The notes beneath the pieces were generated by a model that had not been told where the DNA came from, ran no database searches, and saw nothing but the letters and a program-made list of their open reading frames with translations. A DNA stretch of 64,000 bases from Mytilus trossulus (taxonomy: Eukaryota), in assembly GCF_036588685.1 (NCBI RefSeq), contig NC_086373.1, positions 109,864,001 through 109,928,000 on the forward strand, given 5' to 3'. Shown here piece by piece: positions 15,901-39,942 of this stretch. The first letter of the stretch is position 1, and every line of letters starts with the position of its first letter. The position numbers were made by a program, and so were the translations under genes.

Positions 15901-18900
15901 AAGAAACATTACAAAATAATAAATTTCATCTATCCTTTTGAAGTTATATATTTTTTTTTAAATAAGGATATTTTATGCTCAATTCAGAAATAGTTTACCT
16001 TAGCTGTATTTGGAAAAACACTTTCTGAAATTTAAGTCCGCCCCTTGAAATGTGCATAAATACATAATGACGATTTTAGTCTTAGAGAGGATTTTGTATT
16101 AGTTGCTACTGGTTTTGAAGTAGCTGTCAGTAACTATGAGTACTCTCAGATCTGAAGTATAAAAAAGAAGATGTGGTATGATTCCCAATGAGAAAACTGT
16201 CAATAAGAGACCAAAATTACACAGACATTAACAACTATAGGTCATCGTACGGCCTTCTACAATGAACAAAGCCCATACCGTATAGTCAGCTATGAAAGGC
16301 CCCTATATGACAATGTTAAACAATTCAAACAAGAGAACTAACGGCCTAATTAATATAAAAAAGTTAACGAAAAACAAATATGTAACACACAAACAAACGA
16401 CAACCACTTAATGACAGGCTCCTGAAGGTTAAGGGTCTTTTTGTAGTTGCTACGTTAACTCTGTGTTTTTGTAAAACATGTTTTAGGTTTTTATTTGATG
16501 AATCAATCCCTTTTTAACTGATTTTTATAGTTTGGTCTTTTGATGTACTGTTACTCTACTGGCTCATGTTAGGGGAGCTTTGGCGCCTTCAAAATAAATT
16601 AATCAAGACACAATCTGTATGTGCCCGTTCTTATTCAGTGGTTATCGTTTGTTGCTAATATTATATTTGTTTCTCGTTCATAATTGTGTATATAAATCAG
16701 GCCGTTATTTTTGTGAATTATTTTACGTTTGTCATTTTGAGCTATAGCTTTTGATTTCTGTGTCACTTGTGAAGAGTTGTCTGATTGGTAATTATACCAT
16801 ATCTTCTTATTTTCATATTCAAAGATTTTACAATTATACATTTGCTTTTGTACAGGGTGAATTTTGAGTTTTTTCACAAAGTGATCTTATCGTATACCCC
16901 TGTGTGGGAAAATCAAATACTTTCTTTTTTTATTATACTTTATACTTTTATCTTGTACTCGATGTAATACATGAATATCTGCTTTGCAGGATAAAAAATA
17001 CTGCAAATATGTAATGATACCTTCTTGTTATTTTTCAGTGTGTCAGTGTGCTAGTATCTGTGGTGACCTTGACAGCTATATCAGTTGAACGATACTTAGC
17101 TATCTGCCGACCATTGTCATTCCGAGGCTCCAGGTTCCGAACAGCCCTTGCTGTGCTGATAATATGGATACTTTCTCTAGTGTCCTCGTTTCCATATCTG
17201 GTGTTTATGACATTGATTCATGATGATTTAGTTCCTGAATCAATTGTATTGCTAACAAGTTGTGTATCATCCGATTTCAACCAAGAATACATATTCCAGA
17301 TATTTTTGATGGTAATATTTTTCCTGATCCCATTCCTCATAATGACATATACATACATTCGGATCGCTTTGTGTTTATGGAGAAGCAGTACATCAGGCTC
17401 TGTTGTTTTAAGTAAGTATGAATACTGTACTGAGAAACAAATTTATTAAACATAACTGAATCTGAAAAACAAATGACCAGTTAATAATCGACGTGAGTAG
17501 GTATTAGCTATACATAAGACGTAACACGTCAGAATGTACGACAAGGATGACATTGGTTAAACGTTGTCAAAACAGAAAAAAAAACATCAGAACAAGTTTC
17601 TTTAGCCGTATTTGGCACAACCTTTTGGAATTTTGAGTCCTAAACGCTCTTCAACTTTATACTTGTTTGGCTTTCTAACTAATTTGTTCTGAGCGTCACT
17701 GATGCGTCTTATATAGACTCATTAACTAATCATAGATACCCGGATTTAAATTTTGTCTGTCGTATCAAATTCTAAGCCTGGTACCTTTGGTAACTACTTA
17801 CAAAAGCTGTGTGAAAATGAATTAATTTATAGATTATATTGAAATCATGTGCTATTGGAATTCAACCATACATACGCGTATTCTTCATTTATTTTTACTA
17901 AAGTCAGTTTTTATAACTGCAATGGAACAATATCCTGTACTACATTGATTATCACCAGAAAATGAATTTGCGTCTAAGGACATTTTGTTCTAAACATACC
18001 TGTACAAGGTCAGGAATATCACAGTTGTTTTCTGTTTGTTTGATTTATTACATCTTTCGATTGGAACGTTTTGCAATTTCCTTAGAGTTTGGTATGTTTT
18101 GTTACTCTACTTTTTACCTCGTCATCGGTCCAAAAAAGAGAGTTATATTGTGTCATCTAAAAGTGTTATCTTTCTACCCTAATGTTTGAATTTACGTTTT
18201 AAAAGATTAATAAGGAATAGTTAAACTATGTATCTTCATTTTTATGTTCTGAATGCGTCTTGCAAACTTACCTTTATATATTATTTGACATAAGACTTTG
18301 TAACAAATTTTCTTATATACTTTTTAGGCATTTATTTTATCGAAGAGGGTATATTCCGTATTGCCGTGGTTATATATTGCACATGTCTTCCTTATCAAAA
18401 TAAAGCAACTGTAACAGTTTTGTTGATTTGTTAGAATAAAATTGGCTTCCATAGCGGAATTGATTTCGATGCAAGAGAAATGATATTAGTTATCTGTGAT
18501 AAACGAGAAAAGGGTGGGATTGTACCTATCGCAATAAAAAGACAATCGTTTTGATTTTAATTAATTATTGACAGGCTATAGATAATATTTGGCTAGAATC
18601 ATGGTGTTTTTCATTTCAACTTTTTATCTTCAGTACAATCGTTTGACAATATTTATTTTAATTAGAAAAAAATTAACCTGTCTTCAAGGTTGAAATCAGG
18701 AATATTTGTTTAAAGTATTAAGTGTGGAGAATTCAAATGTACGATTTAACGGGAAGACAGACTTAGATTGTCTGTAACAGGTTTAAGAAATCGTACTTTC
18801 TTAAAACTATGGTGAGGTTGGATTCTCTTTGACCCATTCCCCACGTTTCCTATCTTAAGTAGCGAGAAAAGTGTTTTTAAGCAGTAACTACAATAATATT

Positions 18901-21900
18901 TTATTATCAATTCCACGAAGGCATCCATTCTGTTTTATTTATTAACTAATATGAGTTAGCTACAGATAAATATTTCCGCAACAACGAAAATATAGAATTT
19001 AATAGCTATCAAGAGAAATCTTTCAATTATAAATTTGATACCATAAAGGGTTTTTGATGTCAAATAAAATTATCAAATAATAGAAATCAGTTTTTTTTTC
19101 CAAATACAGAAGTTTAAAGTCAATTAACTTCAGAGATTCGATCTTGGATAGTTCCAAACAGATTTGAAAATTCTCCAACAGATGGAGATTAATTGTTTGT
19201 ATTATTCCCTTTTGTGATAAAGTGAAATATAAGTTGTAATTATAAGAGAATGATATTAGAATTCATGCATTGTATAACTTTTAAATCTCAAACAGCTTGC
19301 TAAATACAGCGTTTCAGTGTGTAAACTCTTAAAAATAATGCATTCGATAAAGGCATTATTTTCCAAAATATTTGATAGAAAAGACTCCTCACCAAAACAA
19401 CAATAACATAATATTGAAACATGGATATAGGCAAATTATTTATGTTATACAATATTGGATAGTTCAAAAGTTATTAAGTCACACAGTAATCAAAACACAG
19501 TTTGATATATAAAATATTTATTTGCACAATATTATTATCGATCATGCATATGTGTGCAGCTCTTCATTTGTACTTAGAATGTTGCTTGTTTTTATGATTT
19601 TGTCAGCGACCGGTCTCGTTTTTTTGTTATGTATACACGAGTATTTTTATGCCATAGGCCAACATTTTTGTATAACAAACAAAATCAAGTGTCTACTTTT
19701 TGATCGGGTTGTTGTCTCTTATACATATTCCCTGTTTCATTTCTTACTTTTATGTTCCTTATTAACTTAAATAAACAAATTCATTTGTATAATTCATATA
19801 CTACATTGAAAAAGTTTTTCTCTGGACACTATGTCTTTAAAACAGGTAGTGGATTCCGAAATAAAAAGAGATGTTGGTACAAAAAAAGGCAACATAAGTA
19901 TACCACTGTTTAAAAGTCATAAATCGATTGAGAGAAAACAAATCCGGGTAACAATCTTATTAGTTCTCAAAGGTACCAGGATATAATTGAATACGTATAT
20001 AGACGAAACGCGTGTCTGGCGTACTAAATTATAATCCTGGTACCTTTGATAACTATTAATACGTCTACAGAAGACTTATCAGTGACGCTCAGATCAAAAT
20101 ATTATAAAACCAAACAAGTTCAAAGTCGAATAGCATTGAGGACCCAAATTTCTAAAATTTTGTCCCGAATACGGCTAAGGTAATCTATTCCTGGGATAAG
20201 AGAATCCTTAGTTTTTCGAAAAATTAAAAGTTTTGCAACAGGAATTTATAAAAATGACCAAATAATTGATATACATGTCAGCACTTCATACTGGGCCGGT
20301 GATACCCTCAGGGACGAAACATCAACCAGCAGTGACATCGACCCAGTGATGTACATAGTTATCAAAGGTACCATGACTATAATATAATTTTATAAGCCAG
20401 ACACGCGTTTCGTCTACATAAGACTTATCAGTGACGCTGAGATCAAAATAGTTATAACGCCAAACAAGTGCAAAGTTGAAGAGCATTCCAAACAGTTGTG
20501 CCAAATACGTCTAAGGTACTCTATTTCTGTTTTTTTTTTAAATATTCAACAGGAAATTTATAAAAATGACCAAATAATTAATATTCATGTCAACACCAAA
20601 GTGCTGACTACCGATGATACCCTGAGGGACGAAACGTCTACCAGCAGTGGCATCGACCCAGAAGTGTAAATAGTTATCAAAGGTAACAGGATTATTATTT
20701 AATGGGTCAGACCAGCGTTTCGTCTATATAAGACGCTCAGATCAAAAGGAATATATTGGAAAGCAGCATGTTCAAGATTACCTTCCACTTTTCCTGATTT
20801 GTGAACGATATTCACCTCTCTTAACTCAAACACATGAAAAGAATGGATAACAACTGTCACATTTGTTTAAAGTAGAAAATTTTGAACTCATGTCTATTCA
20901 TAACTTTTTAGTCCTCCAGAAACTCTATAAAAGTGTCTACAATGTTAAATGAGTATTAAAACTGTCTTAGTGTTGATCGTTTTTACCCTCTTGATACTAT
21001 GTTTTTATCTCGATCGTTAAACGGGCACTAGATAATATGTTTTCTGATTGTGTCTCGATTGCTTGATATCCTCTAGATTCTAATTTGTATTCTTCTATCG
21101 TTTACTGTCTACTTGATACAGTGTAACCTGCCTAATATGACACATGAGTACTACAACATTCTGCTTTCACCGACACTTTTTCATGGTCCTAATATATACC
21201 TATCCTCGCAGAAAAACCTTAGTATACTATTCTACTTGTCTCGATTGTTTTATTTCTTACAGAAACTATTGTTATGTATCACAATTGTTACATTTCTCCG
21301 TATTCTAATTTTTTGTTGTATTGATCGTTTAATGCCCTATAGTTACTTTATGTATGTTGTCTTATTCTTGAAATGTAATAATTTTTTCCCTATCTTTTTT
21401 CTCCTACGAACTTCTTTCTATCTGTATCTTGTTTTGGTCTTTTAGACTCCTATTGTTAATATTACTTTGTATTTCCCTATTGTATAGAGGGTACATCATA
21501 ACTATCTATGTCGGTCTTTTAAAGTCCTCTTGTTACTTTTGCTTTATATTTCTCTATTATATAAAGGGTTCATTATATTATCTGTTATAAAACAGGGTCA
21601 ATTTTTTTCGTGGCAGTTTAGCGATAGACATATTATGTAGACAATTGTTTTTGTTTTTGTGTTCTATTTTAAAGCCGTCTTTAGTGCAGTATACAATACA
21701 TCTGGCTTTATTCGTCTTGTTCTTGATTCGAATGCTAACACTGATGTTTACTTCACTACATTGTAAGATGATCCAAGTAGTAATAGTAAAGATAACTGTT
21801 AAAGACTAGAAAGGATGCATAAAGAAATAATAATTGTGGTATTGCTTCTGAGACTTTTGCCTTAGAAAAACTGGATTAGTTATTCTCATTTTCGACTCTC

Positions 21901-24900
21901 TTAAACAACATCAAGTATCTACAATCAAACGCCATCTTCCAGCTGTAAACCAGTACTGTGTAGTCATGTGAGTGAATCCAACGAAGTAGACTTGTTGTCT
22001 GATCTTACACCAATTACTAGTGCCAAATTCTCAACGGACAAACATAAAGTGATAGAGAAAGCCACCAGCGAGATTCTTCAATAAGATTCCTCAAATGTTT
22101 GTTACATAATGCACAGTTATAAGAGCAATTCATCAAATAACATGAAATCTTCCTTACATATGATGTTCCGTTTGGGGAAAATAATGACAGATTACTCTTT
22201 ATCTTAACTATATACATCATAAATGAATTATAATGTGTTTGTACGCGGTTACATAATTTTAAATGTTAGTTATTGTCATTTCAGATAGTAGATCGGAAGG
22301 AGCAACAATACAATCCAGAGCGAGAAAACGAACTGCCCGGATGTTGATAGTTGTAGTTATTGTGTTTTTTATTTGTTACATTCCGGTTTATTTGAGTAAT
22401 ATATTCAGGTAAGGCTATCATTAAAGAAGGGTCATGAATAGTCAACATTGGCCTGTAGAAAATAAAAAAAGATTTACACAGAAGAAAACATTTCAATCCT
22501 TGCTAAATACATTCCGCAGATTTCCATAGCATTTTAGGTATCACACCACCAATTACTCCCTCCAATTTAGAACGTATGTGAAAGTAGGCCTACTCGGACA
22601 AAACATAGTGTATTTGATGTCATTGTTTACTTAAACTAACCAACAAATTGGCAGAAATTAAACTTTTATATTAAGACCATTTTGAGTTTAAATTTACTTG
22701 TTTATGAGTTTGCATTCAAAATTTAGGATTCATGCACTCCATAGTATACTAATTGAAGAGTTCCAGAAAACAGGGGTTATTTGTAGTGGTACCTCTATTT
22801 AAAAGACCTCTTCTTCCTGATATGATTTTAAACATCTGTTGAAAGTTAGCATGTAGAAAGCTGATACATGTACAATTCAGGATATACCTGGTTTCTATGA
22901 AGTTAAACTAAGGAAAAATATTTAGAAAGCTATGAAAATTGCAAAATTTGGTTCAACAGATAGGGACTTTTAATTGGTGGTCTGACACCAATAGCACGTG
23001 GTTAAAGACCGTTGAGTTATAAACAAGTTATAAAAAGTGCCTATATATTTTGCGCTTGGATTTTTCGGAAATTGCGTTAGTAATGAATTCAGGTTACAAT
23101 TTACAACTGGATAATCATAATCAATATCGAACATATGCTAACATCTTCCGTTTGAAAATCTTCCGACAAAATAGTACTTTGTTACTGACATGATTTATAA
23201 CATATTTTTCTTAAACTCGTCGCTGTCAAGATTTTCAACGGGAAGTATCAGTAATCATCTCTCAATTTTGAATCTCTCTCTGGTTATTTTGTTAAAATAA
23301 CATAAATAACACCAAACAAAAACAAGCGTTGTATTTTGTAATATTGAAAATTGTCAAAAATACTGAACTCCAAGAAAATTTCAAAACGGAAAGTCCTTAA
23401 TCAAATGGCAAAATCAAAAACTCAAACACATCAAACTAATGTATAAAAACTGTCATATTTCTGTCTTGCTACAGACATTTTCTTATGTAGAAAATGATGG
23501 TGGATTAAGCCTGGTTTTATAGCTAGCTTAACCTCTCACTTGTATGTAATTTATTACATAAATCGAAAAAAAATATTTTAAACATATTTAAGACAAGTTA
23601 TTGCATCTTATATTACTCATTTTCTACTTTGCGGGTGCGAGTGCTGCCTTGTAGCGGCATTAGTCTGCTCTTTTTCGAAATCTATAAGGGTGTCTTTCAC
23701 GTGCAAGAGATAATGACTCTCTCTTAACGCGGGTCAGCTATTTATCGTCCCCTTCCAACGGACTGTCATCGTTTCCTCAAAACGAAAAAGTAATACTCAA
23801 AGGCAACGGCGGAAATACAACAAATACGTGCTTTTTAGACGGAAAATGATTTTTATTTTATTAAAAATTGTGATTCTGTGACTATAAACGAAAAATTCAA
23901 ATTCTATTGAAAAACGTTATGGGTAATAGTATAAACATGCATATCGTATTATTGAAATGTTTTGTTTATTTTGTCTTTTGTGTTGTCCAACGATTTCACT
24001 AGCTTTAATATGAGGATTGTATATATTTAGTTATTTCCCAAAGTTCTTTTGAAGTATTCTTGAAGGTACATTTTCCACAGTTAACCCATCAATTATGACA
24101 TCATGTGCGTGTTGAAAACAGTTCTGCTTGTTATAAACTGTTGACAAAGCCATCTTTATCAATATAGTCAGATAGCAAATAGAAATTATAGTTTATTCAA
24201 GTTCTCCTTAATGAATTATCAAATGAATTATCAAAAGAATAGATATAGTAAATATACGTTATTGATCACAAGAAAGGAAGTCGTCGACAAATAGTACTAA
24301 ATACTTTGTTTTAATATTTGTCGACAAACATTACTTAGCAATTTGTTTTAACTCAGATTAACATATATATGATAAAAGTGCGTGTAATATAAAAAAGTTT
24401 CCTTCAATATCGATATCACAGCTATAAGCAATGGATTGATTCACCACAGTGGAAAATGATTTATTCCGGATTTGTTGTCGCTTAATCAATGTATGACTAT
24501 TTAACAGCGATATATTACTATTGTCTTTATTCAATGCATAGTCATGACGAGAACAATTAAAAATAAGTACAGTATGCAGGGGCTGCACTGAGTAGTTGAC
24601 AAAATTGATAGGTGACAAATGTAGACTGCAACTGGATCATGAAGGTAAATCTACAGACCATTTACAAAATTTCATGGATTATTAACGTACATAGAGCATT
24701 GTATATAACGCTGTTCCCATTCTGACAAAACGTGGCAGCGTATCTTTACATTCCTTACAACATAGCAGACGCACCACTTTTACAAGTATTTAAATGCCGA
24801 TCGCAAAAAAGATCAATGGATGACCATGTTTGTATACTGCAGTTAATCATAAATTAAAAAAGTTGAATCAAGAACAAGAACTTAACCATATGTAAATACG

Positions 24901-27900: not shown

Positions 27901-30900
27901 ATTCATTTATTGTGTTTGAGCTTTTGATGTTGTTGGTATGTTTTTAACGACCAGTGACAAGTTTTCCGTTCAAATATTAAACACATTTTGAGAAGCTTAG
28001 GTTTCAACCCCTAACAAAATGTTGGATATCGAAGGATGCCTGAGTCTTCAAGGTCAAGGTAAATCCAGAAAAGTACATCAGACGCAGATAATTGATAAAG
28101 TATTTATATAAACATGAAACTAGCTTTGAACTTGACCGACACGCTAAGCAGAATAATTTTATATTATTAACTGATTTGCCCTTTTAAAAAAACACTTTTA
28201 ATGTAAAAATAAGTAGATAAGATTTGAAAGAAAGGCGTGTTAGATACATGGAGGTGATCAAAGATCTTTTCTATGCTTGATGATGTTATTGAAGCTTGGT
28301 ATTTGTACATTTTGAATATTTTTGTCTACCGAAAAAGTCATCTTTTACGCCTTGATATCGTTATATACCTAACACATATTATTTCTGTCATAGGGTTCTG
28401 TTTGATTGTTAATGTTACATTACTGAGGATAAAGGGCGGTCTGTGTTGAAATGAAATGTATGAAATCAGACGTTTTGTTGTATCTATTTCCAGAATGTTT
28501 AACAGAAACGTAAATTGCTATTGGTATCACTTAAACTGCTTTAACAGAATAGCATTCAGCTTATTGAAACAGACATAAAGCTTAAATGAAAATTAGACAA
28601 TGTAAGAGTAAGAACATTTTATAGATAAAAATAATAAACTTGATCATTTAAAAAACAATAATGATCATAATAGTTATGTGGATAAAAAAATAGATCAATT
28701 AATGAAATGACTACATAAATGTGACGGTAAACTATTAAAGATTTAAGACTGTTCTAGAATTATGAAAATAAAACAGCTTTTTTAATGTATAAGTTACAAA
28801 ACAAATCGGAATTATAATCCTGGTACCTTTGATAACTATTTACAAAACAAATCGGAAATCAGTAGTATTTAAATTCCTCCTTGTGAAAACTGGAATTCAA
28901 ATATCTAATTGTTGACATTGTAATATCCAGATGTGTATTAGGAAAGGATTTTGAACTTTATAAACTTCTACCAGGTTTTATAAAAATGAAATTAGAAGAT
29001 TGTACAAATGTTATGCGTCTTTCTTTTATTAACTCAATCAAACACTCACAAAGACGGAAAAAACTACTAATACATATAAACATACATATGAGTAGAAGGA
29101 ACACAAACTTATCGTCAAATCTATCTACACCGCCTAAGGCGGTTTGGGTGTTGTTTTTTTTTTTGTTTTTTTTGTTTTTTTTTTATCTTTTTCTAATTTT
29201 TTTAACTGGCAATTTACAAAATAAAGTGTGTAATGTGTCATGTCAGAATCCGGAACACTGATCACTGATGTGATGATATCAAGGACTTCAAGTTCACCAA
29301 CAGAAATATCCAACAATTCTATAGAAAAATTGAAATAAAACTTTATAAAATGTATGCTCTTGAAGTACTGTTATGGATTAATCTTTATTAGAAACGCTCA
29401 AAACCAAACAAAAAAAAAGACAATGTGTTTTAGTCGATTTTAGTCTCTGATGCATGATTTTTTACTATTAATTGGTTTTGGCTTTTAACTAGCTGTCAGT
29501 AACTGCGAGTACTCTCAAATCGTATTTTCTTGTTAATTCGACCTGTTGATACTGTTTATAATGCTTTTTTGTCATTTTCTATTTATATGGATCTTGGCTG
29601 TATACCAGCTTTGATTATTTGTAATATCTTCAATTTTTTACTTATTCTTACAACATTTGTATAAACTTCAAGATTATAAAAAACCGTTTTTTTTCTAAAG
29701 TGAACATTGATTGGTTAAATATTTCTCAGTGTGTTTGAATTTGTTTGATAGCCTTTTGGTCATGACTGTTTGTCTCTAATATTTAATTAACTGTGCATTT
29801 GTATTCAGATCAAATGTATTCGTTCTTTGTGTAATCATACGTTTTTTGATTGAGTTAAGTCTGCTAATTGATATTTTATGGTATGTTTTTATATGTTGTG
29901 ATGTTATGCTATTGTTTCAGAAAAAGGGAGAAGGTTTGGGCCCATTAAAACGTTTAATCCCGCTGCAAATGTTTGCACCTGTCCTATGTCAGGAATCTGA
30001 TGTACAGTAGTTGTCGTTTGTTTATGTAATATATACGTGTTTCTCGTTTCTCGTTTTGTTTATATAGATTAGACCGTTGGTTTTCCCGTTTGAATGGTTT
30101 TACACTAGTAATTTTGGGGCCCTTTATAGCTTGTTGTTCGGTGTGAGCCAAGGCTCCGTGTTGAAGGCCGTACTTTAACCTATAATGGTTTATTTTTTTA
30201 AATTGTTATTTGGATGGAGAGTTGTCTCATTGGCACTCACACCACATCTTCCTATATCTAAATATTTATAAGCACAGTAACACATGTAGAGCTGTTTGAC
30301 CAAAGGGACATACAACAGTAGCAACATACATATAAGATGCACGTGCTAAGAACCATCCTATATATATTACTATACTTGGAATTATGAAACTGGTAGTTGA
30401 TATCTGTGTAGTGTCCGTATATTCAAAATTAAAAGTTGTTGTACTAAAAATGCATACTTATCGGGATTAAAATTGCCATATTCATAAAATATTGATGCTA
30501 ATGCATGTGCTTATAATAGTCTCGCTTAGTTAACGTGAGGTTTGTTACTAATCATGCAATTCTGAAAAGAGCTGTAATTATTCTGTCGTTGCAGACATTA
30601 CCAACATAGATTTATTGTTTCTAACTTTTGCATATGAGTACATCGCACGAAGTTCTAGCCTAATTCAATTTTTGGTCTTAATTGAATTGTACTTTTCATA
30701 TTACACTAAAAAGTGTTAATACTGTTATTTTCTATGTATCAAGCTTAACATGGCTATTTACGCACCGACTGTCCTATTAAATATATCACGCACTTGTTCT
30801 CGACATTAATAAAAGTGAAGGTCGAGGATGTTTATGCAATAGGTTTATAGTTCACAAATTTCTTGATTTGTTTTGAGATAAAAAAAAATGTCCTTGTTTT

Positions 30901-33900
30901 ATACAACCACCGTAATCTGAATTTACCATTTGAAAATTATAGATATCCTTATTTTAGTATTTAAAATCATCTAAATGGCTAAAACATATATACTTTTAAT
31001 ATAATCATATTTCCTTCAATAAATCAAACAAATTATGTATATTAGAACAATAAAAGAACTATAGTGTATCAGGTATGAAATAACAGATGCTAAAATTATA
31101 GGGCAATATTTTCTGAAAAACGAAAGACGATAAGAGTGCAACATAAATAACTTCCTTTGGTCATGTTGTTGATATATATACTTTTAATACAGTATGGTGT
31201 GTACCCCTCATTTGGACATTATGTCTGTTTATTTTGTTTACACATCGTTATCAATACATATGCTACTGTTATGATGTTAAGCTAGCTATAAAAACAGGTT
31301 CAATACACCATTGTCTATATAAGAAAATGTCTGACCAAGTCAAGAATATCAGTTGCTATCCATTCGTATGATGAATAAAGGCAACAGTAGTATACCGCTG
31401 TTCAAGCTTTTTATTTTGGCTTTTTATTAGGGACTGTCAGTTTTGAATTTTCCTCGGAGTTCAGTATTTTTGTAACATTACTTTTTAACAGAATGACTCG
31501 ACCATACTATTATGCGAAGTGTTTGATACGTCTTGTCCTACTAAACAACATAAAGGTCTGTAATTCTCTTGTCTTTCAGGAACGTTTATGGAAATATATG
31601 CAATACTCCAGGAACAAACCAGACATTGGAAAATAAGATATCAATCTGTTCCTTGACATAAGTTAGTGACAAGTACAAATAATTTGGTATCCGATGATAG
31701 TAATACATTTTATAAATTGTAACATTGATGGAGAGTTGTCTCATTGGCACTCATACTACAACTTCCTATATCTATATATAATAAATATAGAAACGAGAAA
31801 ATATATATAGATCTGTATTACGAACAACAAACATATATTTCCTTTAAAATTTACAGCGTCTCGTCTTCAAACTGTTTTTTTAATGATATAACAAACAATA
31901 TATTTAAAATTGTCTATGTCCTTACGCCTATCCCGTCATAACTCCTTCTGCTCTTGAAGAACAGAAAATGTAGATCACCTTCTTTTTCAAATTTATTATT
32001 TTGTTTTGTTTTAAAGATATGAACATATTTAAATGTACTCGTTGGAATATATTATGTCCTACTGTTGATTTGCTGGTATAACCAAAACACGTTATCAAGA
32101 TGTCATTGCAGTAACTACAAGTACAATTTTATGTTTTATCGAAGATATGCAGGTATGACAAGTACAATCAATCAGGATTTTCTTGTAGTAACGACAATGT
32201 ACAATTTATGTTATTGTAGAAATGCTGGTAGGCTCGAGTTGGCATTTTAGTAACTATAATGTACCATCTTATGTTTTATTATAGATATGCGGGTATAACT
32301 AATACACCCAATCAAGATGCCCGTGTAGTAACGACATAATCCATATTATTTTTTATTGTAGATATTCAAGTTTGAAAAATACAACCAATCAAGATGTCTT
32401 TGTAGTAACTATAAAGTTCCATATTATGTTTTATTGTAGATATGCGGGTTTGACAAATACAATCAATCGAGATGTCCTTGTAGTAACTATAACGTAACAT
32501 ATAACGTTTTATTAAAGATATGCAGGTTTGACAAATACAACCAATCAAGATGTCCTTGTCGTAACTATAACATACCATATAATGTTTGATTGTAGATATG
32601 CAGGTTTGACAAATACAACCAATCAAGATGTCCTTGCTTTAACAACTTTAACATCTCATCTCCTTTGCTATTTCAATAGTGCCATCAATCCTGTTATTTA
32701 TAATTTTATGAGTGGTAAGTTCTTATGTAATATAAGAAGTTACAATATATATAAACTGGTTAGAATGATGCAATTTTGCATAATGTAATACGGATTTGTA
32801 TAAGTAAGGCAGCTTTGTTGTTGAATGTCGGAATGTATTAATAGAGATTTGCTTGTTTGATATCTTATCCTGTAGAGTAATATTATTTGTTATAGTAGTT
32901 ATAGTCGCATCAATATCTATTATTTTCGTATTTGGTGCCAAATCTCATAACGATTTTTCTGGTATATTGATATTGAAATATTATAGTACTATATCGTTAC
33001 GGGACCTTTGTCGATTTGAAAGTCTTATGTTTATCAGATGAATAGTCCAAATAACACCAGTTTTCAAAAAAAGTGCTTGCCTTTCTAGTTATTATTTTAT
33101 GATTAACGATTTTTTTTCAAATATCAGGTACTGAAACCAAAATTGTTTAGATGGAAATCTGGTAAATGTACAATAAAGAAAAATCCTCTGCAGTAATATT
33201 GTTCAACTACATGTTATAAATACATACACCACCACTTACAAAAACAAATGCAAATGCAAATTGAAATGACCAGTTGTACTTAGAAAAGTAAGACGTCTTT
33301 AGTATAAAAACCCGTACAAACTAGAAAACACTCACAACCCTTGATCATAGAAATAGTCTACTACTGCGTCGATTGTGATACGAAACTACTTCACTTCTGA
33401 CAACTCAATTTTCTAATTCACAAAGCCTGCCAAGCGTTTAACTATTTGATTGAAATTTTAGCTGTCGACTATTTATGAACTGTGATCAAATGTACCACAT
33501 CCTGATACCAAACAAATAATCAACAGGTCTGGGATGTATAATCAGTCTCCTGATACCAAACAAATAATCAACAGGTCTGGGATGTAGAATCAGTCTTATG
33601 ATTTGTAATGAAATACAGACAATAAGAAGTTAGAATATTATAACATACTAGTATTATGACAGTCGAATTTTGTTTTTCAGAAAAGTTCAAGAAAGAATTC
33701 CGCGTGGCTTGTAAACTTTGTGGCTTAGCACCGACACATGGAAGACACGGAACATTAACAGGTAGATTTTGGTGTTAAATTGACGCCATATATTAAAGAT
33801 ATTGTTTGATGAATGTATTCAATTGTTAGCATTATGTTGTCATCGACCCACTTGTTATCAGAGATACATAGCATCGTTCTCATTCTTTTTGATTCTTCTG

Positions 33901-36900
33901 AATATTGTTACCGTTATGACCACATAATATATACATTGTATACCATCGAGACAACGACCAGATAAAATATTGAACGGTCGAATTGTCTCTCTTCATTATT
34001 TTTGTTTTCTTCTCAAACTCTCAGATACTCGGACTCATAAATAATCATGTCTAGTTGGGCATTGCATAGATTACTATACGGTATGTGCGTTACTCATTCT
34101 TGAACACTATATAACTTGTTTAGAAAAATCTTTTTATTTTTAGCCATGGCGTTGTCAGTTTATTTTCAATCAATGAGTTTGTCTCTCCCTCTTGTATCTT
34201 TCGTCCCTCTTTTGTTCTTCGTTCTTTAGTGGCAAGTAATCGCATACTAAACAAGGATCAATCATTTTTCTATAGTAACTGCAGTACAAAAAAATAGAAC
34301 TGAATTCTAGGTTAATGTGTCACTGTATGAATAGATTTAAACTACACTATATCATAGAAAAATATTTGCAGATGAAAATAAAAGCAAATTTTCAAAATAA
34401 CAGCAGATACTGAACAAAATCATCGTTTGAAAAACATTTTAGAAAATCTCTGTTTTAATCATTTTGCATAAAGTATTCCAAATATCAAAGTTCATCTTAG
34501 TAGCAAATAGTCAACAAATATAAACCGAGTTTGAGTCTGTCTTGAATTCAATCAAAGACTTTAAAATGTAGCGCTGTGTTAGGTAATCCTTTGTATTTGA
34601 TGCAACTTTACTACACGACACTTTAGAAATTGTTATATCATTGATGATTAATGATTGATCAATTTATTTATTTAATGAAATTCCAGAAAACTTTAGGTGG
34701 CTAATATTACCATTCAATCTTTAGCTGACACTTATGAAGGATGAAGTCGAGTCTTGTTCCAATTAGGTGCTGTAATGATAGTTGATATAAATAACGGGAA
34801 TATACTGAAAGATTGCTTTAGTTTCATTAAATAAGTTGTGTCAGCTCAACATGTGTTTCCTTGTTTGTTAAAAACAGCCATCCAGTTAATAAAAATATGT
34901 TCTCTCTTGTAAACAATAATTGTTCGACACGTGATTGATATCTTTATTGTTTCTTTCCGTACAACCAGAATTACGAATAAGGTTATATTGTTCAGTTGAA
35001 GACAAAGAAATACAAGTCATTCACAAATTGTCATTTTCAATAATCTAAAACAACACGTCAGTCTTTTTCAATAATTACATTATATGACGCTCAAATGACA
35101 TCATAAATTACTTTTCTGTATTTATTGAAATACACAGCAGATTTTTTTTTTAGATATTTAGGAATAATTCAACATATTCGAATACAAAGGGTTGAATTAT
35201 TTTAATCTTCATGCAATTTTAGGTGTCTAATCATAGGCCTTTCATTGCATTTTAATAGTAATCAAAAGTACCAGGATTATACTTTTATACGCCAGACGCG
35301 CGTTTCGTCTACATAAGACTCATCAGTGACGCTCAGATCAAAATAGTTAAAAGGCCAAATAAATACAAAGTTGAAGAGCATTGAGGATTCAAAATTCCAA
35401 AAAGTTGTGCCAAATACGGCTAAGGTAATCTACTCCTGGGGTAAGAAAATCCTAAGTTTTTCGAAAAATTAAAAATTTTGTAAACAGAAAATTTATAAAA
35501 AATGACCATACAATTGATATTCATGTCAACACCGAAGTGCTGACTACTGGGCTGGTGATATCCTCGGGGACGAAACGTCCACCAGCAGTGGCATCGACCC
35601 AGTGGTGTTAATAGTAATCAAAAGTACCAGGATTATAATTTTATACGCCAGACGCGCGTTTCGTCTACATAAGACTCATCAGTGACGCTCAGATCAAAAT
35701 AGTTAAAAGGCCAAATAAATACAAAGTTGAAGAGCATTGAGGATTCAAAATTCCAAAAAGTTGTGCCAAATACGGCTAAGGTAATCTACTCCTGGGGTAA
35801 GAAAATCCTAAGTTTTTCGAAAAATTAAAAGTTTTGTAAACAGAAAATTTATAAAAAATGACCATATAATTGATATTCATGTCAACACCGAAGTGCTGAC
35901 TACTGGGCTGGTGATACCCTCGGGGACGAAACGTCCACCAGCAGTGGCATCGACCCAGTGGTGTTAATAGTAATCAAAAGTACCAGGATTATAATTTTAT
36001 ACGCCAGACGCGCGTTTCGTCTACATAAGACTCATCAGTGACGCTCAGATCAAAATAGTTAAAAGGCCAAATAAATACAAAGTTGAAGAGCATTGAGGAT
36101 TCAAAATTCCAAAAAGTTGTGCCAAATACGGCTAAGGTAATCTACTCCTGGGGTAAGAAAATCCTAAGTTTTTCGAAAAATTATAAGTTTTGTATACAGA
36201 AAATTTATAAAAAATGACCATATAATTGATATTCATGTCAACACCGAAGTGCTGACTACTGGGCTGGTGATACCCTCGGGGACGAAACGTCCACCAGCAG
36301 TGGCATCGACCCAGTGGTGTTAATAGTAATCAAAAGTACCAGGATTATAATTTTATACGCCAGACGCGCGTTTCGTCTACATAAGACTCATAAGTGACGC
36401 TCAGATCAAAATAGTTAAAAGGCCAAATAAATACAAAGTTGAAGAGCATTGAGGATTCAAAATTCCAAAAAGTTGTGCCAAATACGGCTAAGGTAATCTA
36501 CTCCTGGGGTAAGAAATCCTAAGTTTTTCGAAAAATTAAAAGTTTTGTAAACAGAAAATTTATAAAAAATGACCATATATTTGATATTCATGTCAACACC
36601 GAAGTGCTGACTACTGGGCTGGTGATACCCTCGGGGACGAAACGTCCACCAGCAGTGGCATCGACCCAGTGGTGTTAATAGTAATCAAAAGTACCAGGAT
36701 TATAATTTTATACGCCAGACGCGCGTTTCGTCTACATAAGACTCATCAGTGACGCTCAGATCAAAATAGTTAAAAGGCCAAAAAAATACAAAGTTGAAGA
36801 GCATTGAGGATTCAAAATTCCAAAAAGTTGTGCCAAATACGGCTAAGGTAATCTACTCCTGGGGTAAAAGTGTTATCTGAGGAACGCGAGGGTTAACTCG

Positions 36901-39900
36901 ACTGATATAAAGTAAATTTCGAGAGACTACTTGCCGGAGGACTTAGGTTGATTAACCTTTCCCACATGTGACAGTTTGCAATTAGTATTGCCAATGTTTT
37001 TTTCAACTGATCAGGTGGAGCCTACGTTTTGATTTGCATAAAGACAGACTTTTTAAAGATGTTTTTGATTAAGATTATTCCCGTTATAATTATTATTACA
37101 GTTTTTCTAATCACCAACCAGTGTCATCATACGCATGAACTACAGGTCTAAAAAGTGTATGATATTGGACAAATATTTTTTAGGTTATGTGAATAATTTT
37201 TTTTAAGGAAATCAATAGTAGTTAATTTTCGATGGTATTTTCTTTTATAGTTGTTTTTTTCTAAGATATCAAATATTTCCCTTTTAAGTTATATCGGTGA
37301 TTTTATTTTGTTTTTTCATTTTAATCATTTGATGCCTTACCGATCGTTTTCATATATGTGGAATTAAATGCATATTGGAAAAGGTTCGCAAAATAAACTA
37401 TAAATGAATAGAATGAGGATTTACACTATGAGCATTCTCTCTATCTTACCTTAACTCTTTTTTATATGTAACATGACTTATTATGAAATCCCGGATGAAT
37501 ACAGATAATAAATATTTTGTATTGATCAGCTTAAAGGTTGCCCTCCAAGCTTTGTACTTAATGAATGTATCAATATGCGTGTTAATTCCCGTGTAAGTTA
37601 TTTTAGACTGTCTACGTTTCTTAGTATAATGAGAATAAACACAACATGGTAGTAAGGTGACAAAAGGTGTATCTATTAGTCGACAAAATATTATATTTTT
37701 GAAAATAAAAGTCCAAAATAAACTTATAATAAACTGTCAATTTCAAGATACACATCAAGATATGAAGCAAAGCTAACTGTGCCTGTTATATCCCTTATTG
37801 ACAATGCAATATGAAAAAAGATGCTCTCTGTATTTTCATTAAACTTTAAATAATCCAAAAGAAATCAATGAAATAATGTAAAACGCGAATGTATTGATAA
37901 AGTGCCTTGAACAAAACTATTAGACATATCAACTGCTTTGAAATATTTTACGAATTTTTCATTCTAATTGCGGCATTACTTTGTCATTTTTTTTAATTAT
38001 ATTCATGTCATCTATCTGTTCTGAGTTTTGACAAACGTATTTTTTAATTATTTTGATCTTGTTACAAGGATTCAGTAAAAATACAACAGGGGCTAAATGT
38101 AATCTATCAATCTTTAAAATGTTTGTAAACTTAATTTACTTGTATTTCCCCCAACATTTATTGATGTATGAGTACACAAATTTCCTTTGCATTTCCTTGA
38201 GTCGATTCTTAATGTAATCTGTTTTATCTTCCATGCAGCTACTGTCAAAATGGACACTGTAACAGAGTAAGTATCAAACAACAAGGTTTGGAGGGATAAC
38301 GAGGGCAATTTAAGACACCAAGGTTTGCAGGGACAACGAGGGATATTTTAAGACACCAAAGTTTGGAGGGATAACGAGGGCTATTTAAGACACCAAGGTT
38401 TGCAGGGATGACGAGGGATATTTAAGGTTTGCAGGGATGACGAGGGATATTTAAGGTTTGCAGGGATGACGAGGGATATTTAAGGTTTGCAGGGATGACG
38501 AGGGATATTTTAAGAAACGTTTTTATCAATACACTACTGTTGATTCATTTTCGTCGGTATCAATTGTCGTGGATTGATGAGAACTTGCACCTTCGAGATT
38601 TTGCATACACAACCTATTGAAAATGTGTTATTCGTTGAATATTTGAACTCGTGCTTCACTTGTATTCACTAAACTCTCGAATATTGGTATCCAACGAATA
38701 ATAATGAATCTAAAGTATCATAAATAAACTCATCATAAATACCAGGATTTAAAATTTTGATGTGCGCCAGATGTGCGTTTCAACTACAAAAGACTCATCA
38801 ATGACTCATCTTAACTGTTTTGAAATAGTTTACAAAAGATTAATGTCTAGAGGAATGTTAAATGAAAAGCATTTTCTGTAATTCAAATCTTGAAACGGAT
38901 TTACTGCTCATTATTTAGAGATAATTGTTAATGTTCCAAATTATCAGTTACGTGCAATTAACAAAACGTTTACGCCTGTCAGAGCCAAAGGCACATTTTT
39001 ATACAGAAAAAATAATAATAATGAATTCCGATGCACGAACCTAGAATGATTTGCTTTAAAAAATAAAAGACTGTAAATTGTTGAAACAGTTAGAAATAGT
39101 TGTTGTACTTACATAAGAGACGTTTTTGAATAGTTTTGTTAATTTTGATATTCGAATGCGTTTATTTTGGTTAATAATGACATTTTATAATTATGTGGCT
39201 TAAATTATGTATAAATGCATTAAACGGTAAATAGAAATTTCAAAAATTTTAGATCGTTCAACAGACCACACAAACTAGTAACATCGTACTCCGCAGAAAA
39301 GTAATATGTACAAACAAAGATTAATAACAATGAATATCTGTCCATTAGCCTGTGTGATTGAATCAGTTAAAACGTACTCATAAACCTCTCCTTTTGATTA
39401 CGTATCTAAACCATGTGTCGTTAAACTTTGGGTCATCTACTAGGGGGAATATTTCAAAACTGTATGTATAAATACATAAATTTGGTGAACTATTTTATAA
39501 ATCATGTCTAATAGAAAGAACATAATTGAAGGTAGTAACGGTTTACATATTAACATATTGAACATGACACAAAGTTAAATGGCTTTGACTACATAACAAT
39601 ACCACGGGTATGGACGGATGAGTTTACCTTCTGGGATAATTAATTTTATTCCTTGTTTGATTAGACGAAAGTCAATTGGTATTTTCTGTTGTTCTGATGT
39701 TCGTGTGTCTGTGTTTATGTTATATTATGTCCTTTCTATTCCATACCATCATTAACTTTGGCGTTTTGATTTGTGGAAAAAGGTCGTTCATACTGTATTC
39801 CGGTCTCTGTAGGTATTCTTGCGATTCACTGTATTAATGGTTGTTACATTTCAGGAAACTGTGCAGTGATCGTTCTATAAAGAGATTCCCTTATCAGAAT

Positions 39901-39942
39901 TCACATGAAGCAGCATCAGAAGACTCGAAGTTTCTCCATTAA
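6587..39942 (+). CDS. Orexin/allatotropin-receptor-like class A GPCR, 7 coding exons: join(6587..6949,17039..17411,22285..22408,32596..32714,33681..33761,38239..38266,39855..39942), 391 aa
   Basis: Seven TM segments with GN (TM1), NLSIADFL and CLPP (TM2), MCK..YLQ..ERY (TM3), FFLIP (TM5), ARKRTARML..CYIP (TM6), NSAINPVIYNFMS (TM7) and EKFKKEF helix 8. Strong similarity, from recall, to HCRTR2 and insect allatotropin receptors. All introns are GT-AG and the phases (0,1,2,1,1,2) join into 1176 nt with no internal stop. Confidence 0.92.
7683..7805. repeat. 39-bp tandem repeat, about 3 copies
   Basis: ttttggaaa.ct.aatt.gtt.gactgt recurs at 7683, 7722 and 7761. Confidence 0.8.
7940..8231 (-). mobile_element. 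Truncated family 1 retrozyme monomer in intron 1, with an intact hammerhead at 7975..8018
   Basis: Begins at the shared end aatagttatcaaaggtacc, carries the same hammerhead as the array and stops at gtgctgacta. Confidence 0.9.
9118..9233. repeat. Tandem repeat of about 45 bp, about 2.5 copies
   Basis: ctgtgttt...aagccaattaattgtcggatcgaat recurs. Confidence 0.75.
17039..17411 (+). CDS. GPCR exon 2 (TM3-TM5)
   Basis: Acceptor ttgttatttttcag|TGT; CVSVLVSVVTLTAISVERYLAICRPL...IALCLWRSSTSGSVVL; donor A|GTAAGT, phase 1. Confidence 0.95.
17602..17798 (+). mobile_element. Decayed retrozyme, sense to the gene, with a broken hammerhead
   Basis: gagcgtcactgatgcgtcttatatagac has core CUGAUGC and no GAAA. 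It is interrupted by an opposite-orientation end fragment at about 17721-17757 and ends in cctggtacctttggtaacta. Confidence 0.75.
19961..20747 (-). mobile_element. Older, decayed retrozyme array (about 2.3 units) with an internal inverted fragment
   Basis: Unit starts at about 19961, 20356 and 20670. Hammerhead cores are mutated (CUGAUAA) or deleted. Inverted piece at 19997..20057. Confidence 0.85.
22285..22408 (+). CDS. GPCR exon 3 (ICL3-TM6)
   Basis: Acceptor gtcatttcag|AT; (N)SRSEGATIQSRARKRTARMLIVVVIVFFICYIPVYLSNIF(R); donor AG|GTAAGG, phase 2. Not in the ORF track. Confidence 0.93.
22537..22989. mobile_element. MITE of about 455 bp with 19-bp TIRs, copy 1
   Basis: ggtatcacaccaccaatta ... 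taattggtggtctgacacc; colinear with 57912..58379. Confidence 0.85.
23590..23780 (-). mobile_element. 5'-truncated copy of the same SINE
   Basis: Matches about 41865-42052 (ctttgcgggtgcgagtgctgccttgtagcggcattag...). Confidence 0.85.
28812..28839 (+). mobile_element. 28-bp retrozyme end fragment with an 18-bp target-site duplication
   Basis: ttataatcctggtacctttgataactat flanked by ttacaaaacaaatcggaa at 28794..28811 and 28840..28857. Confidence 0.85.
29421..30260. mobile_element. High-copy unclassified interspersed element, longest copy
   Basis: Ends in gagagttgtctcattggcactcacaccacatcttcctatatcta. Related copies at about 1503-2067, 12930-13733, 16100-16810, 48750-49081 and 61820-62030. Confidence 0.75.
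32065..32636 (+). repeat. Tandem repeat of about 78 bp made of the intron-3 3' end plus the first 41 nt of exon 4 (about 8 units)
   Basis: Exon-like starts at about 32068, 32145, 32220, 32285, 32362, 32440, 32518 and 32596. Confidence 0.9.
32596..32714 (+). CDS. GPCR exon 4 (ECL3-TM7)
   Basis: Acceptor tgattgtag|A; (R)YAGLTNTTNQDVLALTTLTSHLLCYFNSAINPVIYNFMS; donor G|GTAAGT, phase 1. Acceptor choice is ambiguous because of upstream repeats. Confidence 0.88.
33500..33596. repeat. 48-bp direct tandem duplication
   Basis: tcctgataccaaacaaataatcaacaggtctgggatgta.aatcagtc at 33500 and 33548. Confidence 0.9.
33681..33761 (+). CDS. GPCR exon 5 (helix 8, proximal C-tail)
   Basis: Acceptor ttttgtttttcag|AA; (E)KFKKEFRVACKLCGLAPTHGRHGTLT; donor G|GTAGAT. 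Read-through would end GRFWC* at 33778. Confidence 0.88.
35289..35332 (-). ncRNA. Type I minimal hammerhead ribozyme (array unit 1)
   Basis: Minus strand reads GCGUCA CUGAUGA GUC UUAUGUA GAC GAAA CGCGCGUC^UGGCGU. Core, stems I and II, and palindromic stem III (ACGCGCGU) are intact. Predicted cut between 35295 and 35294. Confidence 0.93.
35645..35688 (-). ncRNA. Hammerhead ribozyme (array unit 2)
   Basis: Identical to unit 1. Confidence 0.93.
36001..36044 (-). ncRNA. Hammerhead ribozyme (array unit 3)
   Basis: Identical to unit 1. Confidence 0.93.
36357..36400 (-). ncRNA. Hammerhead ribozyme, core-mutated (array unit 4)
   Basis: Core reads CUUAUGA (G5U) instead of CUGAUGA, so it is predicted inactive. 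Confidence 0.85.
36712..36755 (-). ncRNA. Hammerhead ribozyme (array unit 5, partial unit)
   Basis: Identical to unit 1. Confidence 0.93.
38239..38266 (+). CDS. GPCR exon 6, 28-nt microexon
   Basis: Acceptor ttttatcttccatgcag|CT and donor GA|GTAAGT; (A)TVKMDTVT(E). Converts phase 1 to the phase 2 needed by exon 7. Confidence 0.72.
38282..38513. repeat. Minisatellite whose unit changes from 37 bp to 29 bp
   Basis: caaggtttggagggataacgagggcaatttaagacac units are followed by ggtttgcagggatgacgagggatatttaa units (loss of gacaccaa). Confidence 0.9.
38722..38808 (-). mobile_element. Retrozyme fragment of a third end-variant with a degenerate hammerhead
   Basis: aaataaactcatcataaataccagg...gcgccagatgtgcgtttcaactacaaaagactcatcaatgac; core UUGAUGA and stem II disrupted. 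The same end variant occurs at about 3100..3133 and 62984..63018. Confidence 0.7.
39855..39942 (+). CDS. GPCR exon 7 (terminal)
   Basis: Acceptor ttacatttcag|G; KLCSDRSIKRFPYQNSHEAASEDSKFLH* in phase 2, a Ser-rich GPCR tail. Confidence 0.72.

Follow-up and report, generated by a model that had tools for sequence, protein, structure and literature searches.

A young, still polymorphic array of hammerhead retrozymes in a receptor-gene intron of Mytilus trossulus

The minus-strand tandem array of 4.5 (4.53) units of 356 bp found in the Mytilus trossulus window (the whole 64,000-nucleotide stretch that was analysed) is a young insertion that is still polymorphic. With high probability it arose in one event, through target-primed multi-round copying of a non-autonomous non-LTR retrozyme belonging to the family that Cervera and de la Pena (Nucleic Acids Res 2020, PMC7229834) described in mussels. 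Retrozymes of this kind are already known; what is new is the empty allele together with the empty paralogs, the restriction of the variation to singletons, the fixed 3' end and the antisense intronic location. The published account gives neither empty-site evidence nor a pattern of 5' truncation, and a word search of it for 'truncat' returned nothing.

Tandem Repeats Finder (TRF) delimits the repeat to 35252-36867 with a period of 356, 4.5 copies and 98% matches, which bears out the near-identical units described in a first-pass annotation of this DNA. The exact limits of the 1,612-bp insertion, in which three bases are ambiguous, were taken from the empty allele (Table 1). The 64-kb window contains no runs of N. 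The array has a GC content of 38% and adjoins unique intron DNA directly on both sides; it is non-coding and lacks an LTR, a primer binding site and a polypurine tract, and no open reading frame of at least 45 amino acids was found on either strand from 33965 to 37621. Read in the RNA sense, it starts at about q164-167 (q, position in the unit) of a 5'-truncated first unit and stops at the fixed 3' end of the family. Ten differences distinguish the units from one another over 1,612 bp, and every one of them is a singleton, a situation that fits with units that were identical at birth. Unit W4 carries no singleton change and would therefore represent the founder sequence. Two sites, q348 (the A in 'tagtAatc') and q137, are private to the array, being present in all its units and in none of 116 sampled family units. 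The private variants listed by the first-pass annotation thus hold for the A at q348, whereas the 'aaaag' state is the consensus of the young family and hence shared. The exact private 24-mer of the array occurs at just three other genomic places, and these were rejected as sibling arrays, all of them lying in 82-95% diverged copies.

Table 1. Coordinates of the array, its units and the neighbouring host exons in the window
Feature	Position	Strand	Evidence or remark
Inserted retrozyme array	35253..36864	-	TRF; 1,612-bp skip 35252->36865 in X1/X2 DNA contigs; paralogous empty sites
Unit W1, 5'-truncated (q164-356), hammerhead 36712-36755 intact	36675..36867	-	predicted cleavage between 36718 and 36717
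Unit W2, 355 bp, hammerhead 36357-36400 with G5-to-U, predicted inactive	36320..36674	-	24.6 bits; 1 pattern mismatch; singleton q284
Unit W3, hammerhead 36001-36044 intact	35964..36319	-	
Unit W4, hammerhead 35645-35688 intact, zero singleton changes	35608..35963	-	
Unit W5, 3'-terminal, hammerhead 35289-35332 intact, stops at the family's fixed 3' end	35252..35607	-	predicted cleavage between 35295 and 35294
3'-terminal 29-nt block, q326-354	35254..35282	-	end point of family arrays; stub 28812-28840; Penelope-like element copy
TAA, left copy of 3-bp duplication/microhomology; target GCATT-TTAA-AAG	35253..35255	+	joint in DNA contigs; paralog sequence
TAA, right copy of 3-bp duplication/microhomology	36865..36867	+	joint in DNA contigs; paralog sequence
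Host receptor exon on the upstream side of the array (helix 8, beginning of the C-terminal tail), CAG acceptor, GT donor	33681..33761	+	tblastn of P0001, 93% over 29 aa
Host 28-nt microexon downstream of array, flanks cag and gtaagt	38239..38266	+	9/10 residues match P0001

The insertion itself is documented by sites that lack it. Two paralogous sites (C1:109794059-62 and C1:109969001-4) read through the target as ...GCATT-TTAA-AAG... without the array, and an allelic empty site was detected in two public DNA runs, X1 and X2, where position 35252 is joined to 36865. In X1 the empty contig measures 587 nt, with flanks of 146 and 439 nt, one mismatch in each flank and two gaps in the longer one; X2 contributed two further contigs with the empty joint, and the contigs of both runs are uninformative on whether the filled allele is present as well. 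The array joins its target through a duplication or microhomology of 3 bp (TAA). The absence of the array from the two paralogous sites and the allelic empty site indicate that the insertion is recent and still polymorphic, and the claim of a single recent insertion made in the first-pass annotation is thereby upheld, in agreement with the singleton-only variation. The distance between units of the same array amounts to about 1% in nearly every family array sampled, a rather high value for a polymorphic insertion, which only a very diverse population or error-prone copying would explain. These observations also bear on a satellite-like origin, in which unequal crossing-over or replication slippage would have multiplied, at the site, an original insert of one or two units. 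Such an origin is very unlikely here, since stepwise duplication should leave nested shared variants and none of the ten is shared, while the empty allele lacks the entire array and no alleles of intermediate length were seen in the DNA contigs of the locus. In its favour, larger arrays do contain variants common to at least two units (11 shared against 26 singletons in L050; 4 against 6 in L048), so that DNA-level turnover takes place somewhere in the family. Singleton changes dominate in all 18 family arrays sampled.

The family at large follows the same architecture. More than 5,000 candidates were found in the genome in a first-look search. In the 38 other arrays that were fetched, and likewise in the older copies of the window, the 3' end in RNA sense is constant (...GAUAACUAUU), lying about 41 nt beyond the hammerhead cut, whereas the 5' ends are scattered over the unit; about 25 other arrays share with the present one both this end and an arbitrary start. 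Such a pattern is the hallmark of target-primed reverse transcription, and the one fixed and one truncated end proposed earlier for the array alone were in this way recovered genome-wide. Common ends at q306 and q50 that appeared in the first genome search proved to reflect the 50-nt margins with which candidates had been scored, the true ends being given by the fetched loci. A 29-nt stub of the family 3' end stands alone at 28812-28840 within a target duplication of 17-18 bp (28795-28857), which proves an insertion of the target-primed type. Around 27 arrays, no long target duplications were found above chance, the longest common strings measuring 4-11 nt.

Every unit contains the cleavage site in its interior, and the fixed end lies elsewhere, so that the template cannot have been a cleaved linear monomer primed at its end. 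Rolling-circle copying from one circular template, put forward in the first-pass annotation, is a plausible route that is consistent with the data and corresponds to a model already published (PMC7229834). The data require only a template with an internal cleavage site, and a multimeric transcript of an older array that stayed linear and uncleaved, was primed internally and never passed through a unit-length circle would also provide one. This unlikely source of the array finds some echo in a few 5' ends located at the cleavage site or immediately ahead of it (q306, q308 and q313/314 in L036, L024 and L031), a position to be expected of templates whose 5' end a ribozyme had made, and in a weak excess of ends within q261-329 (about 10 of 27, with about 5 expected). 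The stable fold predicted for the double hammerhead further implies that multimers exist, at least transiently. Against it, differences between the units of the parent would be carried over into the copy, and the array holds singletons only, an argument that is not decisive; published northern blots found more than 75-95% of the RNA of the family as circles (PMC7229834); and the 26-unit array L050 would call for a transcript of about 9 kb escaping some 26 ribozymes.

At the level of the ribozyme, the Rfam model RF00163 (Hammerhead_1, type I) yields one minus-strand match per unit, five in total, spaced by 355-356 bp, and aligns the conserved core CUGAUGA...GAAA...UH together with helices I to III. 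Four of the matches cover the full model at 33.0 bits (E 7.7e-6), and the one in W2 scores lower because its core reads CUUAUGA. It follows that the statement that each unit has a hammerhead is correct for the motif in five of five units and for an intact ribozyme in four of them. The Rfam scan of the whole window at the gathering threshold gave no matches, and the ribozymes emerged only with E-value reporting: the intact copies miss the gathering score (34 bits) by a single bit on account of helix I and loop 2, all core nucleotides being aligned. The topology is that of a type I hammerhead with an open helix I of 6 bp, a helix II of 3 bp capped by a 7-nt loop, the stem III palindrome ACGCGCGU and the cleavage triplet GUC, these last two exactly as first described. 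A 32-nt ribozyme pattern occurs seven times in the window and in none of 100 shuffles. The canonical fold of the array ribozyme is computed at -4.4 kcal/mol, and for whole units the fold of neither strand was significantly better than that of shuffled sequences (z = -1.4 and -1.1). The ribozyme shows no depletion of singleton changes (14 observed, 17 expected), and there is thus no sign of selection after insertion.

The stem III of the array consists of two pairs and a GCGC loop, which is the typical form of invertebrate retrozymes (PMC7229834). The 'minimal' hammerhead of Penelope type has a one-pair helix III and resides in the terminal repeat of an RT/GIY-YIG element (Cervera and de la Pena 2014). 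The earlier assignment to that type had to be abandoned, as the stem has two pairs rather than one and no coding element adjoins the array. As for cleavage in the form of dimers, a double hammerhead built through the palindromic stem III is strongly favoured in silico (-31.5 kcal/mol against -20.0 for two monomers), but a published mussel clone in which stem III is the same needs only one ribozyme per construct to cleave, at about 0.1 per min (PMC7229834). Self-cleavage has been published solely for this near-identical M. galloprovincialis ribozyme and is predicted for the intact copies of the array.

The identity of the array as a retrozyme is well supported, given that its hammerhead is that of the published M. 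galloprovincialis clone except for one base of loop 2. In that species about 5,000 hammerheads have been reported, and for a retrozyme clone both self-cleavage and abundant circular RNA have been demonstrated, the circles being described as highly self-paired (PMC7229834). Both mussels share tandem units of about 350-390 bp, low GC and thousands of copies, and array and clone are identical in the core, in helices I-III and in the stem III palindrome and have in common a GC-rich domain after the ribozyme; they differ in the host, in the loop-2 base and in most of the AT-rich part. Metazoan non-LTR retrozymes are defined by units arranged head to tail, about 150-450 bp long and poor in GC (under 45-50%) (PMC7229834), and the array displays a hammerhead per unit, tandem structure, non-coding sequence, dispersed insertion and homology. 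Type I hammerheads in repeats of about 330 bp, whose palindromic stem III permits a double hammerhead, are likewise found in newt and axolotl satellite 2 and in Schistosoma Sm-alpha (RF00163 seeds), although the amphibian stem III has a single pair and a tetraloop and needs dimers. Vertebrate non-LTR retrozymes derived from terminal repeats of Penelope-like elements (PLEs) (Li, Clavereau and Pollet, bioRxiv 2026, 10.64898/2026.07.22.740005) resemble the mussel ones in their many intronic copies and in the idea of a non-autonomous partner or derivative of PLEs; in Xenopus whole retrozyme consensus sequences align to PLE terminal repeats, whereas in the mussel only the terminal 29 nt do. With the LTR retrozymes of plants the array would share a hammerhead-bounded RNA that is circularised and reverse-transcribed by a borrowed enzyme, but not the type III hammerheads within LTRs, the primer binding site, the polypurine tract, the 4-bp duplications or the Gypsy machinery.

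The array lies antisense within a 4.5-kb intron of a rhodopsin-type receptor gene. The intronic position claimed at the outset is supported by the exon and microexon on either side, both with canonical splice sites and matching the predicted receptor protein P0001 (Table 1). As a result of the antisense orientation, the host pre-mRNA holds only the inert complement of the ribozymes. Retrozyme-family RNA contigs are present in two RNA libraries, where they are uninformative on strand, ends and circularity; in the same libraries no RNA contigs were found on the flanks of the array, and at position 35353 the family allele, not that of the array, makes up 82-89% of the depth. The surrounding region is a cluster of tandemly duplicated receptor genes, and this setting would suit a DNA-level copy of another array made by segmental duplication or ectopic conversion. 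Such an event is extremely improbable, because the flanking DNA is not co-duplicated, the nearest arrays differ by at least 1.7%, two sites are private, and the boundaries coincide with the fixed 3' end of the family and a 3-bp duplication of the TTAA target.

The terminal 29-nt block offers a possible connection to the enzyme. About 465 copies of it, with 27 of 28 bases identical, belong to the terminal repeat of a Naiad-type PLE of the same genome, in an internal rather than a terminal position, and no homology between retrozyme and PLE was found outside it. At C4:16017796-16023500, for example, two occurrences of the 29-mer are separated by 4,332 bp. The Naiad clade of PLEs dominates bivalve genomes (Craig et al. 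2021, PMC8557442). PLEs, Naiad included, resemble the retrozymes in strong 5' truncation, a fixed 3' end, tandem or partial-tandem insertions, AT-rich targets and inverted adjacent copies (seen in the window at 19996-20734), and canonical PLEs carry a hammerhead near the 3' end; the retrozyme, on the other hand, lacks an open reading frame and its unit is a tenth as long, and Naiads lack canonical hammerheads. It is tentatively suggested that the block (q326-354) may be the recognition and start signal of the reverse transcriptase of a specific Naiad-type PLE with an N-terminal GIY-YIG domain. Retrozyme pieces at 4 of 30 Penelope-like endonuclease loci were rejected as evidence of linkage, because decayed pieces are similarly dense anyway (nine in the 64-kb window). 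A canonical PLE family with a C-terminal endonuclease was also discarded; it ends about 200 nt past the stop codon in (TA)n and has no similarity to the retrozyme tail.

The preferred sequence of events would begin with the transcription of source arrays in the hammerhead sense, after which the ribozymes would cleave behind GUC and free unit-length RNA to be circularised by a host RNA ligase. A non-LTR element, most likely a Penelope-like one, would supply a reverse transcriptase to nick an AT-rich target, prime at a fixed site of the RNA through a homology of few bases and circle the template several times (4.5 here), until copying halts at a random point and leaves the first unit 5'-truncated. 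A minus-strand transcript of the array, if made, was expected to self-process into monomers; with four live ribozymes and one dead one, the predicted products are two monomers of 356 nt and a single piece of 711 nt.

The array is ordinary as to its kind, yet it affords an unusually clear view of how retrozymes are copied into DNA. The filled and empty alleles of the same site, along with the two empty paralogs, make the insertion junctions exact to the base, and these junctions combined with the genome-wide pattern of ends constitute direct genomic evidence for target-primed multi-round copying, which the 2020 paper (PMC7229834) only proposed. They place the start site about 41 nt downstream of the ribozyme cut and exclude an end-primed, cleaved linear monomer as the template. 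The array also provides a presence/absence marker in Mytilus, and the natural G5U ribozyme beside four intact ones is a ready-made control for cleavage assays. The shared terminal block represents a testable lead to the enzyme that moves retrozyme circles: if its proposed role is true, a PLE clade devoid of hammerheads would be moving hammerhead circles, beginning each copy at a defined site inside the unit, and the long-sought autonomous partner of mussel retrozymes would be named.

The array of hammerhead retrozyme units lies in a rhodopsin-type receptor gene of the plus strand, in which Pfam 7tm_1 was found on the ORFs 6587-6997 and 17048-17449. Exons were compared singly, not as a joined model, with P0001, a 241-aa predicted protein of the representative library. 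Splice sites read in the DNA are canonical, with a GTAAGT donor at 32715 and an exon at 33681-33761, and the last coding exon begins at 39855 and leads to a stop codon at 39940-39942. A microexon of 28 nt (38239-38266), bordered by cag and gtaagt, supplies the nine residues otherwise missing and matches at 9 of 10 residues. The exons 33681-33761 and 38239-38266 bracket the array, which places it, antisense to the gene, in an intron of 4.5 kb (33762-38238); a homology-based model built on P0001 exons and splice sites supports, at that level, the intronic position proposed in the first-pass annotation. Given this antisense orientation, the host transcript would carry the ribozyme complement only, and RNA in the hammerhead sense could arise only from separate transcription of the minus strand.

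Receptor exons and repeats around the array (window positions unless a contig is named)
Feature	Location	Strand	Remark
Receptor exon	17207-17413	+	93% identity to P0001
Receptor exon	22284-22409	+	93% identity to P0001
Receptor exon (TM7, NPxxY)	32516-32737	+	84% identity to P0001
Receptor exon match	33677-33763	+	93% identity to P0001
Receptor exon match	39856-39939	+	79% identity to P0001
29/37-bp tandem repeat	38278-38510		3.9-4 copies; 28-nt microexon 12 bp upstream
Dispersed repeat, ~145 bp	36984-37130		right flank of array; SINE- or MITE-like; >600 genomic candidates, 77-83% identity
~43-nt motif	34579-34630		single-copy in the window intron
~1.3-kb minisatellite of the ~43-nt motif	G000:C1:109966980-109968296		one paralogous gene copy, same genome

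Tandem Repeats Finder returned a single array at 35252-36867 with a period of 356, 4.5 copies and 98% matches, as had been described. On the minus strand, every unit presents CUGAUGA, a helix II of 3 bp capped by a 7-nt loop, GAAA, the palindrome ACGCGCGU and then GUC, after which comes the 3' strand of helix I (6 bp). The Rfam scan that had been suggested gave no match in the window at the gathering threshold; with E-values reported, the type I model Hammerhead_1 (RF00163) yielded one full-model match per unit, four of them at 33.0 bits (E 7.7e-6) for a gathering score of 34. The proposal of one hammerhead per unit thus holds for the motif in all five and fails for an intact core in one, since the fifth match (36357-36400, 24.6 bits) reads CUUAUGA, a G5-to-U change. 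G5 is an invariant base of the hammerhead core, and this unit is therefore predicted to be dead. The ribozyme pattern matched seven times in the window and 0 times in 100 shuffles, and these matches are not chance. Its copies at 7981-8012, at 20400-20431 and in the array are all antisense to the receptor gene. A decayed retrozyme fragment (17602-17796), shortly after the exon 17048-17449, is sense to the gene, and its hammerhead region no longer fits the pattern.

Regarding stem III, in the Rfam model ACGCGCGU forms four loopless pairs, an arrangement impossible within one strand; the monomer form consists of two pairs closed by GCGC, called typical of invertebrates (PMC7229834). The canonical monomer hammerhead fold reaches -4.4 kcal/mol and the best monomer fold, which is not the ribozyme, -10.0 kcal/mol. 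Two copies co-fold at -31.5 kcal/mol as a symmetrical double hammerhead in which the helix I strands are swapped and stem III forms 8 bp between the two molecules, a model that makes action as a dimer plausible. The dimer cleavage proposed earlier is compatible with this, but a published clone with the same stem III cleaves from a single-ribozyme construct (PMC7229834). The array's element is not a Penelope-type minimal hammerhead. Folding of the whole unit was no better than that of shuffled sequence (z = -1.4), and robust hairpins are restricted to its GC-rich 5' domain.

Three paralogs of the array's 1-kb flanks lie close by and belong to a cluster of receptor gene duplicates. In two of the three (C1:109794059-62 and C1:109969001-4, on a contig of the same genome) the flanks meet with only four bases between them, and at the former they are 88-91% identical to those of the array. 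The nearer paralog reads GCATT-TTAA-AAGAG versus GCATT-[TTAA TAG...GGGG TAA]-AAGTG in the window. Alignment of public contigs to window positions 34250-37870 revealed an allelic empty site: a 587-nt contig of the DNA run X1 (organism A) covers 35107-35252 and then 36865-37303. With a single mismatch per side, and two gaps in its longer flank, it is far closer to the window than the paralogs are. Two contigs of the run X2 (organism B) carry the same empty joint, which omits 1,612 bases, three letters being ambiguous. The joint and the paralog sequence define the insert as 35253-36864 in a TTAA target, flanked on each side by TAA, which is a 3-bp duplication or microhomology. Given the allelic empty site in X1 and X2, whose contigs are blind to a filled allele, the array is either polymorphic for presence and absence or was gained very recently in one lineage.

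Unit differences were analyzed by aligning the array with 116 full units from 38 other arrays of the family. Seven sites differ from the family consensus in all array units; the changes q137 G to U and q348 A to U (q, position in the 356-bp unit in RNA sense) are fixed in the array and occur in 0 of the 116 units elsewhere. The other 10 differences, 0.62% of 1,612 bp, are each found in one unit only, none being common to two to four units. This star-like pattern fits units that started out identical, as copies made several times from one template, without later unequal crossing-over. Empty paralogous sites, the allelic empty joint in both runs and the star-like differences together sustain the single recent insertion initially put forward. 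Among the private variants listed at first, the q348 base stands and aaaag versus aaagg does not, aaaag being the normal state of the young family. An exact 24-mer with the private q348 base exists at only three other genomic places, all diverged copies. In 18 arrays with at least three units (among L013-L050, the 38 fetched arrays), mean within-array pairwise distance is about 1% in nearly all (0.4-2.8%), and changes are mainly singletons, with about equal transitions and transversions (55:64). A distance of about 1% points to one activity burst or to errors at copying.

The mode of copying is reflected in the array ends. RNA-sense 5' ends of the 38 fetched arrays are scattered over the unit (q21, 23, 44, 76, 84, 139, 148, 158, 179, 194, 205, 244, 270, 285, 293, 306, 308, 313 and 329, among others), and among the arrays with the 3' end inside the fetched piece only two depart from an end at q352-356 (...GATAACTATT, ±3 bases), confirming the one fixed and one truncated end initially described. 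Older retrozyme copies of the window have the same 3' end point. Common ends at q306 and q50, from a first genome search, were an artefact of scoring margins. At 28812-28840 (plus sense, within 28795-28857) a 29-nt stub of the retrozyme 3' end stands alone between perfect direct repeats of 17-18 bp, a target duplication (TACAAAACAAATCGGAA); it is a minimal case of target-primed insertion. Such a fixed 3' end, together with 5' truncation and variable target duplications, is characteristic of target-primed reverse transcription, and above all of Penelope-like elements (Craig et al. 2021). The ribozyme cuts between q313 and q314, a site internal to every unit and about 41 nt upstream of the fixed end. 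A linear monomer released by cleavage and primed at its 3' end is thereby excluded as the template, which was a circle or an uncleaved multimer with priming at one specific internal position. An inverted pair at 19996-20734 joins an older minus-sense array (20062-20734) tail to tail with a plus-sense 3'-end copy (19996-20059, q293-356), resembling the inverted 5'-truncated copies described for Penelope-like insertions.

Penelope-like copies number in the hundreds in a GIY-YIG search of the genome, and open frames of about 1,000 aa are present in many of them. In three loci (L079, L080 and L084) the endonuclease is at the ORF N-terminus, the Naiad arrangement, and the retrozyme terminal block (27 of 28 bases identical) appears about 510 nt upstream of the start codon, ending exactly at ...ACTATT; the stub at 28812-28840 has the same 5' boundary as this block. 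Since the same element sequence comes next in 400 of the 465 genomic occurrences of the Penelope-like version, and the block recurs 4,332 bp downstream at one locus, it lies inside the terminal repeat of the element, not at its very end. No similarity between retrozyme and Naiad-type element was detected outside the 29-nt block, which either serves both elements as a recognition signal or goes back to an old 29-nt stub inserted into a master copy of the Naiad-type element. The 29-mer occupies the region upstream of the Naiad-type ORFs (positions 464-693 of the three loci); in L084 a 305-nt unit spanning it has 2.1 tandem copies, and elsewhere in the genome 29-mer pairs lie 274 bp apart, suggesting short tandem derivatives of the terminal repeat. 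The canonical family with a C-terminal endonuclease (L071, L087-L091, L094 and L099, oriented positions 1764-2290) has a tail unrelated to that of the retrozyme; it ends about 200 nt past the stop codon in (TA)n, and a repeat of about 330 bp often adjoins its copies, in both orientations.

At the RNA level, contigs of the libraries X19 (PacBio) and X20 (Illumina) map on the array and none on its flanks. The array differs from most of the family at position 35353, and there the family allele makes up 82-89% of RNA depth, so this RNA is assigned to the family, in contigs that carry no strand, end or circularity information. Its presence agrees with published northern blots. If the array is transcribed, cuts are predicted at 36718/17, 36007/06, 35651/50 and 35295/94, which would release one 711-nt piece across the dead ribozyme and two 356-nt monomers.

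The array is real and the first reading correct in its main lines; its kind is already published, and this is a copy from a sister species. The family was described in M. galloprovincialis by Cervera and de la Pena (2020; PMC7229834), who reported about 5,000 type I hammerheads, carried by repeats of 350-390 bp. A genomic repeat was shown to self-cleave, at a rate of about 0.1 per min, circular RNA was abundant in gonad and mantle, and in the model they proposed a primed circle gives tandem cDNA. Their cloned repeat (supplement) shares with the array units a GC-rich domain after the ribozyme and differs from the array's ribozyme by a single loop-2 base. In its own 1.3-Gb genome the present unit has >5,000 first-look candidates, many of them in arrays at 96-97% identity. 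To the published picture are added base-exact filled and empty alleles, star-like unit differences, a genome-wide fixed internal 3' end, a natural G5U unit and a 29-nt lead to a Naiad-type Penelope-like element.
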